A stretch of 64,000 nucleotides of DNA, taken from contig NC_088794.1 in the NCBI RefSeq assembly GCF_011386835.1, positions 1,798,001-1,862,000 on the forward strand, given 5' to 3'. Positions 2,319-45,020 of the stretch are shown here, piece by piece; the first letter of the stretch is position 1, and each line of letters begins with the position of its first letter. The notes below the pieces were generated by a model. The model saw only the letters and a list, made by a program, of their open reading frames with translations, did not search any database and was not told the DNA's origin. Source of the DNA: Chrysemys picta bellii (lineage: Eukaryota). Both the position numbers and the translations under genes were made by a program.

Positions 2319-3168
2319 TCACTCCTGGCCACGCCGGCGCTCGGAGCGCTGCAGCTTCAGGGCAATCTTGCGCTCGTGGCCGGCAGGGTTGGGCCGGTTC
2401 GTATTCCCGGCGGCCTCCCGCTTGGAAACGGCCCTTCCGGCTGCACCCACCCGGCACTGGGGGGAGAGAAGGGGGTGAGGGGGGGGGGGAGAGAAGCCCC
2501 TGTGCCCCCTCCCCCACATCCCCTGGGGAGTGCACGCGGAGGGGCAGAGAGGAGGTTGTGAGGCCCCTGCCTCGGGCCCCCCCATTTCCAGTACGCACTG
2601 GAGAAAGGATCCGAATTACAGCAGGGAACCCCACAGCCCCGTGGGGAACAGACCCATAGTGGGGTCCGGGTGCAGAACCCAGGCCTAGGTTGGCAGTGAG
2701 GGGCGGGGAGTGGGAGGCACCGGCAGGGAGTGGGGGGCACGGGCAGGGCGGGAGGCGGCAGGGGGGCACTGGCAGGGCTGGGGGGCACCGGCAGGACTGG
2801 GGGGTGGGCACTGGCAGGGTTGGGAGACTACATGGCGGGAGGCACAGGCGGGCATGGGGGCTCTGGGGTGGGAGGGGGGGACACTGGCAGGGCTGGGAGG
2901 CGGGAGGAGGGGCTGCGAGGGGCTGGGGGGCAGGGCTTGGGGGGGAGGGAAGTGACAGGCACTGTCATGGCAGGGGGCTGCAGGGCAGCGCAGTGGGGCA
3001 CGGAGGGGATGTGGGGCAGGAGTGGGGGGCACCGGGGGGGCTCTGGGGCAGGCGGGGGGCACTCACTGCTGTAGCGTTCGGTCAGGCTGTAGTAGTCGTA
3101 GGGGTCGAAGTGCTGCCCCTCAAAGGGGGTGGGCACCAGCTTGTGGGGCTCGAGCAGGGCCCGGCCAT
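2319..3168 (-). CDS. NUPR1: Nuclear protein 1 (p8/NUPR1); two coding exons, two 1-bp frameshifts as assembled
   Basis: Exon 3168-3067 (gccATGg; LLEPHKLVPTPFEGQHFDPYDYYSLTERYS; phase-1 GTGAGT donor) and exon 2456-2312 (PGGCSRKGR..SKREAAGNTNRPNPAGHERKIALKLQRSERRRGQE*, stop 2321-2319). Matches the NUPR1 motif RKGRxKREAAxNTNRPxPxGHERK; position next to SGF29 fits. Confidence 0.9.
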
Positions 3169-3774: not shown

Positions 3775-4910
3775 GCCCCCACGTTCACCCCCAGAGCCAG
3801 CCCGCCCCAGGTCCCCTCCCCAGAGCCAGCCGCCCACTCTTCCCCCCCCCCCAGAGCCAGCCGCCCCCCGCGTTCACCCCCCCCAGAGCCAGCCGCCCCC
3901 GCGTTCTCCCCCCCGAGCCAGCCCCCCCACTTCCCCCCCAGAGCCAGCCGCCCCCGCGTTCACCCCCCCAGAGCCAGCCACCCCCAGTTCTCCTCCCCGA
4001 GCCAGCCGTCGCCCACACTTCCCCCCCCAGAGCCAGTCACCCCCGCGTTCACCCCCCTGAGCCAGCCGCCCCCGCGTTCACCCCCCCTGAGCCCAGCCGC
4101 CCACGACTTCCCCCCCCCTGAGCCAGCCGCCCTCAACTTTCCCCCCCCCAGAGCCAGCCGCCCCCCGCGTTCACCCCCCCAGAGCCAGCCCCCCCACTTC
4201 CCCCCACCAGAGCCAGCTGCCCCCGCGTTCACCCCCCCCAGAGCCAGCCACCCCCGCGTTCACCCCCCCCCAGAGCCAGCCGCCCCCAGTTCTCCCCACT
4301 GAGCCAGCTGCCCCCAGTTCCCCTCCCCAGAGCCAGCCGCCCACACTTCCCCTCCCCAGAGCCAGCCGCCCCCTGCGTTCACCCCCCAGAGCCAGCCGGC
4401 CCCCGCGTTCACCCCCAGCGAGCAGCCGCCGCCCACACTTCCCCCCCAGAGCCAGCCGCCCCCAGTTCTCCTCCCCGAGCCAGCCGTCGCCCACTACTTC
4501 CCCCCCCAGAGCCAGCCGCCCCCCGTTCTCCCCCCAGAGTCAGCCACCCCCGCGTTCTCATCCCAGAGCCAGCCGCCGCCCACACTTCCCCCCCCCAGAA
4601 CCAGCCGCCGCCCACACTTCCCCCCCCGCAGAGCCAGCCGCCCGCCCACACTTCCCCCCCCCCAGAGCCAGCCGCCCACACTTCCCCCCCCTCAGAGCCA
4701 GCCGCGCCCCAGTTCTCCCCCCCAAGCCAGCCGCCCCCGCGTTCCCCGCCCCAGAGCCAGCCGCCCCCGCGTTCTCCCCCCAGAGCCAGCCACCCCCGCG
4801 TTCACCCCAGAGCCAGCCACCGCCCACACTTCCCCCCCCCAGAGCCAGCCGCCGCCCACACTTCCCCCCCCCACCAGAGCCAGCCCGCCCCGCGTTCACC
4901 CCCCAACACA
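3775..4910. repeat. C-rich minisatellite (about 30-bp unit, ccccccagagccagccgccccc...)
   Basis: Dozens of degenerate tandem copies visible. Confidence 0.9.
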
Positions 4911-4989
4911 GACACAACCCCCCGCCCCCCCCCCCGCACTGCCCCCGGGCACAGGACACACCCCCCTCATTGCCCCAAGCGCTTCCCCC

Positions 4990-5330
4990 CGGCACAGACA
5001 CATCCCTCCCTGACCCTCCCCCCCGGCAGAGACACACCCCCTCCCTGCCCCCCCGCGCTGCCCCCCCCCCGCAGAGACACACCCCCTCCCTGCCCCCCCG
5101 CGCTGCCCCCCCCCGCAGAGACACACCCCCTCCCTGCCCCCCCGCGCTGCCCCCCCCGCAGAGACACACCCCCTCCCTGCCCCCCCGCGCTGCCCCCCCC
5201 CCCGCAGAGACACACCCCCTCCCTGCCCCCCCGCGCTTGCCCCCCCCCCCGGCAGAGACACATCCCCTCCCTGCCCCCCCCCGGCAGAGACACACCCCCT
5301 CCCTGCCCCCCCCGTGCTCCCCCCCGCCGG
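4990..5330. repeat. C-rich minisatellite (about 40-bp unit, gcagagacacaccccctccctgcccccccgcgctg)
   Basis: About 7 tandem copies visible. Confidence 0.85.
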
Positions 5331-42100: not shown

Positions 42101-42833
42101 GGCTGGTGGGGGGCTGCGGGTTGGGAGTGAGGGGCACCGGCAGAGCTGGGAGGGGCAGGGCTGGGCTGGTGGGGGGGCTGCGGGTTGGGAGCGAGGGGCA
42201 CCGGCAGATACCCGCAGCGCAGCCACGTCGGAGGGGAAGCCGTGGACAATCAGCACCATCTCCCTGCAAGGAGAGAACCCAGGTCACGCCAGAGCTCCCA
42301 GCATGCCCTGCTCCCTCAGCCTCCACTCCCAGCATGCCCTGCTCCTCCCTCCCCAGGCCAGCCAATTCTCCCAGCATGCCCTGTTCCCTCAGCCTCCACT
42401 CCCAGCATGCCCTGCTCCTCCCTCCCCAGGCCAGCCAATTCTCCCAGCATGCCCTGTTCCCTCAGCTTCCACTCCCAGCATGCCCTGCTCCTCCCGCCCC
42501 AGGCCAGCCAGTTCTCCCAGCATGCCTTGCTCTGCTGCTTAGGTTGTCACGAGTGCATGGCCTGCTGGGAGCCTACCCCTGCAGCATTGCATGCTGGGAT
42601 TATCCCACCACCACCACCATTGCATGCTGGGAGCCGTGTCCCCAATCCTCCTGGGGTTACCAGGGCCCGCGCCCGCTGGTCTTCCAGGCCCCGCCGCGGC
42701 GCTTGCCGGCATTGTGCTGCCCGATGCGGCGCTGGGGGGCCACGGTGAAGCCGACGTAGACACGGCCCCGGTACCGGGGGTTGGTGCAGAACAGCAGGTA
42801 GACGCCGAAGAACCCCCGCGGCTCCGCCCCCAT
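39112..42833 (-). CDS. SLX1A: Structure-specific endonuclease subunit SLX1 (GIY-YIG plus C-terminal zinc-binding domain), 273 aa
   Basis: Exons 42833-42661, 42263-42212, 40760-40413, 39871-39741, 39596-39509, 39141-39112; sum 822 nt. FFGVYLL...[23 protein letters not shown]-terminal GHWTEELQT*. Confidence 0.95.
40790..42205. repeat. About 60-bp minisatellite family array filling an SLX1 intron
   Basis: More than 20 copies of the same unit as 36560-37330. Confidence 0.9.
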
Positions 42834-43469
42834 GGCCGGGCCTGGGGAGAGGGGACGGGAAAGGTCATAGCTGGCCAGCCCCACTTCCCAGCATGCCCCG
42901 GGTCCCCCCCAGCCCCCATCTCCCAGCATGCCCCAGGTCCCCCCATACCACCTACTTCCCAGCATGCCCCCTGTGCCCCCCACTTCCCAGCATGCCCCAG
43001 GTGCCCCCCCAGCCCCCACCTCCCAGCATGCCCCAGGTCCCCCCCCCGTGTCCCCCACTTCCCAGCATGCACCAGGTGCCCCCCAGCCCCCACCTCCCAG
43101 CATGCCCCAGGTCCCCCCCCCCGTGTCCCCCACTTCCCAGCATGCACCAGGTGCCCCCTCATGTAGCAGGTCCCCCCCCCCCGTGCCTCCCACTTCCCAG
43201 CATGCACCAGGTGCCCCCCCATGCACCAGGTCCCACCTGTGCCCCACACTTCCCAGCATGCATCAGGTCCCCCGCCCGTGCCCCCCACTTCCCAGCATGC
43301 ATCAGGTCCCCCGCCCGTGCCCCCCACTTCCCAGCATGCACCAGATGCCCCCCACTTCCCAGCATGCCCCGGGGCCCCTCCAATCCTGCCTCCAGCCTCA
43401 GCTCCTGGAGCCACCGCCCGGGCCCAGCCCGGGAACAGGCACCAGGCGACTCCCGCTGATTGGTGCTTT

Positions 43470-43850
43470 TGGGCAGCGCCGCTTCCCACGATGGATCCTA
43501 TTGGTCGCATTGCGGGAAGCCCGCCCCCAGCCCAACTCTGATTGGAGGAGCTCGGGCGAGTGGCGCATTGGGATGGGACCTGAGGCGGAAGTGGGGCGGT
43601 ACTATAGGCGGAAGTGGCAGTACCAGAGACGGAAGTGAGGCGGCACCAGAGGCGGAAGTGAGGCGGTGACTATAGGCGGAAGTGGCGGCACCAGAGGCGG
43701 AAGTGAGGTGGTACTATAGGCGGAAGTGAGGCGGTGCTATAGGCGGAAGTGGCGGCACCAGAGGCGGAAGTGAGTCGGTGACTATAGGCGGAAGTGGCGG
43801 CACCAGAGGCGGAAGTGAGGCGGTGTCTAGAGGCGGAAGCGGGCGGGATC
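43470..43850. promoter_or_regulatory. SLX1/BOLA2 bidirectional promoter: CCAAT boxes plus a 12-copy ETS (CGGAAGTG) array
   Basis: ATTGG at about 43478, 43500, 43541, 43567; CGGAAG at 43586, 43609, 43630, 43653, 43677, 43698, 43721, 43744, 43765, 43789, 43810, 43834; the genes are head-to-head. Confidence 0.8.
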
Positions 43851-43870
43851 CCAGCGCCTTGCGGAGCGGG

Positions 43871-44952
43871 ATGGAGGCGGCCGAGCCGGCTCTGAGCGCG
43901 GAGACCCTCCGGGGGCGGCTGCTGCGGGGGCTGGAGGCGGAGCACGTGGTGAGTGTCCCCCAGGCCCCTCCCCCGCGCGGCGCGGGCTCCGGCCCCCGGG
44001 GCCTCGCATGGGGGGGGGCGGGGGCCGGTATCGGGGGGTGGCAGGTGGGGGGGCGGGGGCCGGTATCGGGGGGTTCCCGGTGGGGGGGCAGGTGGGGGGG
44101 GCTGGGCTGGTATCGGGGGGTTCCCGGTGGGGGGGCAGGTGGGGGGGGCGGGGGCTGGTATCGGGGGGTTCCCGGTGGGGGGCCCGGTGGGGGGGGCGGG
44201 GGCCGGTATCGGGGGGTGGCAGGTGGGGGGGCGGGGGCCGGTATCGGGGGGTTCCCGGTGGGGGGGCAGGTGGGGGGGGCGGGGGCTGGTATCGGGGGGT
44301 TCCCGGTGGGGGGGCAGGTGGGGGGGCGGGGGCTGGTATCGGGGGGTTCCCGGTGGGGGGGGCGGGGGCCGGTATCGGGGGGTTCCCGGTGGGGGGGCAG
44401 GTGGGGGGGGCTGGGCTGGTATCGGGGGTTCCCGGTGGGGGGGCGGGGCTGGTATCGGGGGGTTCCCGGGGGGGCAGGCGGGGGGGGCGGGGGCTGGTAT
44501 CGGGGGGGGCAGGTGGGGGGGGCGGGGGGCTGGTATCGTGGGGTTCCCGGTGGGGGGGGCGGGGCTGGTATCGGGGGGTTTTGGGGTCACCCCCCCACTC
44601 ATGTCTCCCCCCAGGAAGTGGAGGACACGACCCCGAGCCGCTGCTCCACCAGCTTCAAGGTTCTGGTTGTCTCGGGCCGGTTCCGGGGGAAGCCGCTGCT
44701 CCAGCGACACCGGTGAGCCGGGACCCCCCCCCCCCCCCCGGGACCCCCAAGTCCCGGAGTTCTGGCTCCGGGGGGGGCTGGGGGAGCTCTGGGGCCTGAC
44801 CCCAGGGGGCTCCTGCGGCTCCGGCACTGACCCCCCCTCCCCACAGGCTGGTGAACGAGCTGCTGGCCGAGGAGCTGAAGCACATTCACGCCTTCGAGCA
44901 GCGCACGCTGACCCCCGAGCAGTGGGAGAAGGAGCGGGGGGGCCTGCAGTGA
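43871..44952 (+). CDS. BOLA2: BolA-like protein 2, 93 aa
   Basis: Exons 43871-43948, 44615-44712, 44847-44952; LSAETLRGRL..LEAEHVEVEDTT..RCSTSFKVLVVS.RF.GKPLLQRHRLVN..LAEEL.HIHAFEQRTLTPEQW. Confidence 0.96.
44005..44580. repeat. G-rich minisatellite in BOLA2 intron 1 (ggtatcggggggttcccggtggggggcagg...)
   Basis: Tandem copies visible. Confidence 0.85.
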
Positions 44953-45014: not shown

Positions 45015-45020
45015 AATAAA
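45015..45020 (+). terminator. BOLA2 polyadenylation signal
   Basis: AATAAA 63 nt after the stop. Confidence 0.7.

Follow-up and report, generated by a model that had tools for sequence, protein, structure and literature searches.

Between the divergent genes SLX1 and BOLA2 of Chrysemys picta bellii lies a minisatellite in which an ETS-type motif, CGGAAGTG, recurs at intervals of about two helical turns. The locus raises the question of whether this array is the working promoter of both genes or a passive product of tandem duplication, and of what its copy number means. An earlier note had proposed a bidirectional promoter built from a variable-number tandem repeat (VNTR) of phased factor sites, with which this lineage may tune the dosage of SLX1 and BOLA2. 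The analysis was based on a window of 64 kb (the whole stretch of DNA analysed; all coordinates refer to it), on public sequencing runs and on the corresponding loci of other reptiles.

SLX1 (− strand) and BOLA2 (+ strand) were identified exon by exon with Pfam and stand head to head, with an ATG-to-ATG distance of 1037 bp. In addition to the matches listed in Table 1, an SLX1_C match was obtained in a downstream SLX1 exon. The four ATTGG boxes between the genes are spaced by 41, 41 and 26 bp within the SLX1 non-coding exon; this puts them downstream of where SLX1 starts, and 190 bp or more upstream of the BOLA2 5′UTR. Intron 1 of BOLA2 (44010–44580) consists almost entirely of a G-rich minisatellite with 35–48 bp units and 82% GC. 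The BOLA2 gene measures 1082 bp in Chrysemys versus 441–557 bp in Carettochelys and Gopherus, so that the intron 1 repeats are lineage-specific, unlike the ETS array.

The array was assessed by exact motif counting and by shuffling. The motif CGGAAGTG is present 11 times within 43586–43810 and nowhere else in the 64 kb window; the shuffles gave an expected count of 1.7 and a maximum of 5, and none of 100 reached 11. Together with one CGGAAGCG these copies form 12 units, all co-oriented on the + strand, with unit-to-unit spacings of 23, 21, 23, 24, 21, 23, 23, 21, 24, 21 and 24 bp (mean 22.5 bp). The copy number, orientation and 21–24 bp spacing claimed in the earlier note are thereby confirmed. 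Its two recurring spacer types were also seen, alternating and with the endings ACTATAGG and ACCAGAGG. The array was said to end 30 nt before the BOLA2 ATG; the close placement holds, but the measured distance to the ATG at 43871 is 29 nt. Tandem Repeats Finder (TRF) delimited the array to 43578–43846, with periods of 45, 68 and 112 bp and 83–88% matches, from which the array is read as unit pairs plus a five-unit higher-order block.

Neither a TATA box nor an ATG on the + strand was found in the array. Its CpG observed/expected ratio is 1.08, with one CpG in each motif and none lost, versus 0.18 in the adjoining intronic minisatellite A; this difference fits a germline-unmethylated active promoter. 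Elsewhere in the window, a G-rich minisatellite of 32 bp units (3800–5000) carries GGGGAAGTG in about one third of its units, on the − strand. GGAAGTG alone can therefore recur by chance in repeats of the window, whereas CGGAAGTG does not.

Table 1. Features of the SLX1/BOLA2 intergenic region and adjoining exons (window coordinates).
Feature	Position	Strand	Remarks
SLX1 first coding exon	42661..42841	−	ATG 42833-42831; Pfam GIY-YIG, E = 2.8e-7
SLX1 5′UTR intron	42842..43389	−	548 nt, GC-AG
Minisatellite A, in SLX1 5′UTR intron	42875..43353		35–39 bp units with TTCCCAGCATGC, resembling the ZNF143/Staf site core
SLX1 non-coding exon 1, minimal	43390..43659	−	5′ part formed by array units 1–4; actual start no further left than 43659
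ATTGG boxes (CCAAT on the SLX1 strand), n = 4	43459, 43500, 43541, 43567 (43459..43571)		
ETS-motif minisatellite	43578..43846	+	12 units of 21–24 bp with (A)GGCGGAAGYG, arranged as ~45 bp A/B dimers
CGGAAGTG starts	43586, 43609, 43630, 43653, 43677, 43698, 43721, 43744, 43765, 43789, 43810	+	
Twelfth unit, CGGAAGCG	43834-43841	+	
BOLA2 minimal 5′UTR	43770..43870	+	Final three array units and 29 nt; actual start no further downstream than 43770
BOLA2 exon 1, coding part	43871..43948	+	26 codons, then GTGAGT donor; annotated gene model agrees
BOLA2 exon 2	44615..44712	+	Pfam BolA, E = 1.2e-5
BOLA2 exon 3 with stop codon	44847..44952	+	Pfam BolA, E = 4.7e-5; AATAAA near 45016

Transcripts reaching the array were sought in public runs, of which 14, belonging to four studies, contain no fewer than half of the words sampled from 43380–43960. 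Four runs (X4, X8, X12 and X15) were examined in detail as assembled contigs, which cannot show transcript starts. On the BOLA2 side, contigs of X4, X12 and X15 contain the splice from 43948/9 to 44615/44616, and the mRNA contigs begin at 43770 (X4), 43796 (X12) and 43829 (X15). On the SLX1 side, an 804 nt contig of X4 joins the SLX1 coding sequence to 43388–43628, and a contig of X12 extends to 43659. The coding side of this joint maps uniquely to 42810–42839, in the start-codon exon; the joint itself has a 4 nt ambiguity, for which GC-AG is the sole canonical option. The donor context of this intron is kept in other turtles. The non-coding exon is further supported by the NCBI SLX1 model of Chrysemys, which starts within it at 43510.

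The TRF array thus overlaps the transcripts of both genes and sits in promoter and 5′UTR. With contigs of both transcripts in the array, SLX1 and BOLA2 must start inside it or beyond. No more than 110 bp separates their known 5′ limits, both in the array; this is within the <1 kb used to define bidirectional promoters, and the head-to-head arrangement given by Pfam together with the 5′ contigs of both genes supports the proposed bidirectional SLX1/BOLA2 promoter. Two RNA runs leave a mid-array contig hole (43696–43758 and 43675–43737), a region covered by the DNA-like run X8. Such a hole is compatible with initiation to either side of a short centre that is not transcribed; as a contig hole it proves nothing and is suggestive only.

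These results bear on annotation, as the gene models of two species begin translation in or beside the array. The SLX1 model of Chrysemys has 317 amino acids, compared with 273–288 in other turtles, and probably uses an in-frame upstream ATG that is not the real start. In Mauremys mutica, the public BOLA2 model (148 amino acids) places its ATG within the ETS array, so that array units are translated; the conserved ATG lies at position 3166 of that locus (L007). Both models are probably annotation artefacts.

Related loci were found by a word search with the exon 2 BOLA2 reference, further turtles were added from the members of the protein cluster, and the loci were then compared. Units were counted as (A)GGCGGAAGTG directly 5′ of the BOLA2 ATG. 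SLX1 and BOLA2 are head to head in every informative reptile locus. Two units 22 bp apart were found in the lizard Hemicordylus and in the gecko Sphaerodactylus (the second unit of the gecko being CGGAAAT), and two units 35 bp apart in the side-necked turtle Emydura. Carettochelys has six exact CGGAAG[TC]G and three looser GGAA sites in a different unit. Eight units were counted in Mauremys, nine and one degenerate in Gopherus, nine and one decayed in Eretmochelys, 12 in Chelonia (in very regular 24/21 bp pairs), 12 in Chrysemys, and 18 and 24 in two assemblies of Caretta. A single unit was found in the emydid assembly GCA_028017835.1, a state that rests on this one assembly. Its BOLA2 protein is identical to that of Chrysemys and its unique flank is 3.5% diverged, which indicates a species other than Chrysemys picta. 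Chelonoidis was left out owing to an N gap at the promoter, and the N runs in the Chelonoidis and Caretta loci were left unfilled. The alligator contig ends 248 bp upstream and is uninformative on the ETS array.

Emydura and the emydid, testudinoid and sea-turtle loci compared have each kept two to four ATTGG boxes. Each lizard has one, directly preceding the ETS pair, and none was seen in the short Carettochelys spacer. From this comparison the ancestral state appears to be a pair of ETS sites at a distance of about 22 bp, together with a CCAAT box. Sea turtles and Chrysemys have in common the left flank, the last unit and the B-type spacer; the pair seems to have been amplified no later than in the last ancestor that sea turtles share with pond turtles, and copy number has gone on changing, with a collapse to one unit among the changes. 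The earlier note had treated the array as peculiar to `this lineage', which does not hold: it is common to turtles and grew from a two-site module present in lizards. With two units in Emydura and the lizards and one in an emydid, a long array is not needed for viability.

Copy number also differs within species. The two Caretta caretta assemblies, with 18 and 24 units, differ in internal order. In the painted turtle, contigs of X4 and X8 continue from 43643 with TGACTATA, which is the exact reference sequence minus 43644–43666, that is, minus one 23 bp unit. A further contig of X8 joins the left flank to units like those at 43690–43766; this allele has either lost five units, in step with the 112 bp block, or undergone conversion. 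With depths of 6.9 and 4, the two X8 paths together account for about the flank depth of 12, and X4 contains one more rearranged junction in the array. The painted-turtle polymorphism is contig-level evidence and not genotyping. The Chrysemys picta bellii assembly GCA_011386835.2 has the identical 12-unit pattern, and the two haplotype assemblies of Eretmochelys are identical in the array. The array is a true VNTR. The promoter VNTR of the earlier note is upheld by the range of 1 to 24 units across species, by Caretta and by the one-unit deletion junction in the painted turtle; an invariant array, which the note had named among its grounds for rejection, was not what was found, as copy number varies both between and within species.

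The same comparison bears on whether the 12 units are a false expansion made during assembly. Arrays of this kind can be mis-assembled: one Caretta caretta assembly (GCA_965140275.1; L010, 4988–5420) shows, after a 200-N gap, a second ETS array, incomplete and full of errors, with an ATG like that of exon 1; it is probably a false duplication. For the painted-turtle array, however, contigs of three further studies tile the repeat, the stretch being covered by independent contigs from four studies in all; 14 runs contain half or more of the sampled words, and an ETS pair or array stands at the same place in ten other assemblies. An assembly artefact, another of the grounds for rejection named in the note, is accordingly given a negligible probability.

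The mutational setting was considered next to this variation. Minisatellite A and a second repeat (42295–42525) flank the SLX1 start-codon exon and carry T[TC]CCAGCATGC. Within the 2 kb 5′ of the BOLA2 ATG this motif is present 20 times in Chrysemys and 12–39 times in other hard-shelled turtles, and in only one or two copies in Emydura, Carettochelys and the two lizards. Similar units of about 30 bp were observed on the other strand of the alligator contig (L002, 1–330). To judge from these counts, the same lineage appears to have amplified both promoter motifs, the ETS and the ZNF143/Staf-like one. The window as a whole is crowded with GC-rich minisatellites, including those in the SLX1 and BOLA2 introns, so that the origin of the array requires no selection, only a mutational habit.

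It may then be argued that the array is a neutral by-product, in which the habit of this genome of duplicating 20–50 bp segments amplified an ETS pair, one or two sites do the work, and the rest are passengers whose number drifts. The crowding of minisatellites and the amplification of the SBS-like site next door in the same lineage speak for this explanation, as do the single unit of one emydid assembly, the two units of Emydura and two lizards, and the strongly different internal structure of the array in the two Caretta assemblies. It is at odds with the overlap of the array by both SLX1 and BOLA2 transcripts, with the intact CpG-bearing motifs and the CpG ratio, with the persistence of the array, with common spacer types, in the sea-turtle and pond-turtle lineages and with the divergence pattern of motif and spacer.

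This pattern was measured between Gopherus and Mauremys, whose unique flank is 10% diverged. In seven orthologous units, the 8 bp motif is identical at 55 of 56 positions and the spacer at 86 of 103 (one-sided Fisher p = 0.003); with an 11 bp motif the values are 76 of 77 and 68 of 85 (p = 7e-5). The motif is thus near-perfect in units whose spacers are 17–20% diverged. The restriction to seven cleanly aligned units was made post hoc, after inspection of the alignment: the first, whole-array test of motif versus spacer gave no difference (p = 0.59), a 24-column terminal indel having fallen on motif columns. Sea-turtle units are freshly homogenized, and motif identity there is uninformative on constraint. 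On the alignments at hand, it does seem to take constraint for so many motifs to stay intact over long times, and we consider it unlikely that most units are neutral passengers.

Conservation was further examined in 86 turtle units. The core neighbours outside the anchor (AGG before and G after) are 93–97% conserved and the AC at −8/−7 86–92%, compared with 45–80% at spacer positions. Taken together, positions −8, −7, −5 and −3 to −1 are 83–97% conserved and position −4 is 74% conserved, so that the conserved stretch reaches about 16 nt, AC-Y-A-K-AGGCGGAAGTG. The same upstream pattern emerges when the units of Hemicordylus, Sphaerodactylus and Emydura are pooled; the whole flank can be clearly made out in Hemicordylus and Emydura, only part of it in the gecko. 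Compared with the strict GABP consensus CCGGAAGTG (PMC2077898), 11 units match at eight of nine positions (GCGGAAGTG); the mismatch is at −2, where the array has G and the consensus C.

The conserved upstream flank and the G at −2 leave room for a composite site, in which the longer AC-Y-A-K-AGGCGGAAGTG would be recognized by a different factor or by an ETS protein acting with a partner. The consensus forms of three candidate factors are ATGGC for YY1, GGCGGGAA for E2F and ACTACA...TCCCAG for ZNF143/THAP11. The array unit fits none of them, and the ETS assignment was kept. What does not vary in the unit is precisely the ETS core GGAAGT and the C at −1, and the 21–24 bp pairing fits the geometry of a GABP tetramer. 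A composite site is therefore judged to be decidedly unlikely as the main explanation. In view of the G at −2 and of conservation to about 16 nt upstream, another factor or co-factor may nevertheless act at the array.

The ETS assignment leads to GABP through spacing. The GABP tetramer requires two ETS sites in helical phase, and about 22 bp has been reported as the best spacing for the heterotetramer (PMC9481613). In the TERT promoter, a 22 bp duplication creates an ETS pair about two helical turns apart that recruits the GABP tetramer, and altered spacing abolishes activity (PMC9481613). Most divergent promoters are bound by GABP, and one added CCGGAAGTG can switch on reverse transcription (PMC2077898). 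Neighbouring sites are 21–24 bp apart in turtles and 22 bp apart in two lizards, which suits an α2β2 tetramer on paired sites. The phasing claimed in the earlier note is accordingly retained within neighbour pairs and given up for the array as a whole: at 10.5 bp per turn the site angles cover the full circle, the sites rotating round the helix with no whole-array phase.

We therefore favour the reading that SLX1 and BOLA2 share the array as their core promoter, and that it was tandem-amplified from an ancestral GABP-type two-site module with CCAAT boxes; we regard this reading as probable. In the ancestral module, two ETS sites of like orientation would have stood about 22 bp from each other behind CCAAT boxes, a layout that suits the GABP α2β2 tetramer. 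Tandem copying in the turtle lineage, with the 45 bp site pair as the usual amplified block, would have produced the array, and unequal crossing-over would keep altering its copy number. ETS-family factors, most likely GABP, are predicted to load on many units, transcription would initiate in both directions from within the array, and copy number may shift promoter strength or the spread of start sites.

A stronger, adaptive version, which follows the dosage proposal of the earlier note, holds that turtles set SLX1/BOLA2 dosage through this promoter VNTR in place of a human-type gene duplication. BOLA2 is present once in the window and at one place per assembly; human BOLA2 is described as copy-number polymorphic, with three to eight copies (10.1101/693952). 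Constraint on the motifs and the wide copy-number variation between and within species would suit such a dial. The mutational regime, however, by itself predicts such variation, close relatives range from one to 12 units with no known phenotype, and array length follows no obvious ecological or phylogenetic gradient among 11 species. By analogy with human BOLA2, dosage setting by copy number would be conceivable, but we hold it to be very doubtful.

Under the favoured reading of an amplified GABP-type core promoter, several known systems offer comparisons. Like the GABP/ETS bidirectional promoters of Collins et al. (2007; PMC2077898), the locus has divergent housekeeping genes and a CGGAAGTG-type motif at a shared TATA-less, CpG-keeping start region. 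Those promoters have one or a few sites, whereas the turtle promoter has 12, and that of relatives as many as 24, lined up as a regular tandem array into which the 5′ parts of both transcripts fall; the turtle site also reads GCGGAAGTG in place of CCGGAAGTG. The TERT duplications (PMC9481613) likewise place ETS sites about two helical turns apart by tandem duplication of about 22 bp. They are single somatic events in human cancers that activate a silent gene, unlike the germline, ancient turtle array, which is iterated up to 24 times and sits beside constitutive genes.

Copy-variable promoter repeats whose units contain regulatory sequence are known as expression modifiers (PMC4857002), and the unstable promoter repeats of Vinces et al. 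(2009), as cited in PMC4203960, are alike in being copy-variable and containing regulatory sequence. Such repeats modify expression, as the turtle array might, but the turtle array is itself the core promoter; some turtle units are, moreover, orthologous between families, which implies long persistence. The GGAA microsatellites used by EWS-FLI1 (PMC2654724, PMC10333306) are also length-polymorphic tandem ETS cores. They are, however, pure 4 bp GGAA repeats that become neo-enhancers only for the fusion oncoprotein, unlike the turtle array, which has units of 21–24 bp with a single GGAA apiece, full 8–11 bp sites about 22 bp apart, and belongs to a normal promoter. Close to human start sites, duplicated GGAA motifs (PMC3101357) likewise form clusters of ETS cores, but these are irregular pairs or small groups and not a regular minisatellite. 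A literature search returned no study of the SLX1/BOLA2 promoter, nor any of tandem CGGAAGTG with GABP and a promoter.

The array belongs to a known class, the promoter VNTRs of activator sites; what sets it apart is that it is itself the core promoter and that it has persisted for so long. The loci compared here, from related species and even from one and the same species, form a natural series of one promoter with 1, 2, 8, 10, 12, 18 and 24 activator sites between the same flanks and the same gene pair. This series makes it testable how a bidirectional promoter depends, in its strength, direction and spread of start sites, on the number and spacing of homotypic sites. Most minisatellites are thought to be short-lived; the SLX1/BOLA2 array indicates that a minisatellite with orthologous units can persist under constraint for tens of millions of years. 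As a tentative extension, for which we would not expect confirmation, the array might be a long-lived selectable rheostat whose unit number governs the strength and balance of divergent SLX1/BOLA2 transcription, and the tandem amplification of transcription-factor sites, here the ETS and the neighbouring SBS-like ones, might be more than repeat noise and a regular mode of regulatory evolution in turtles.
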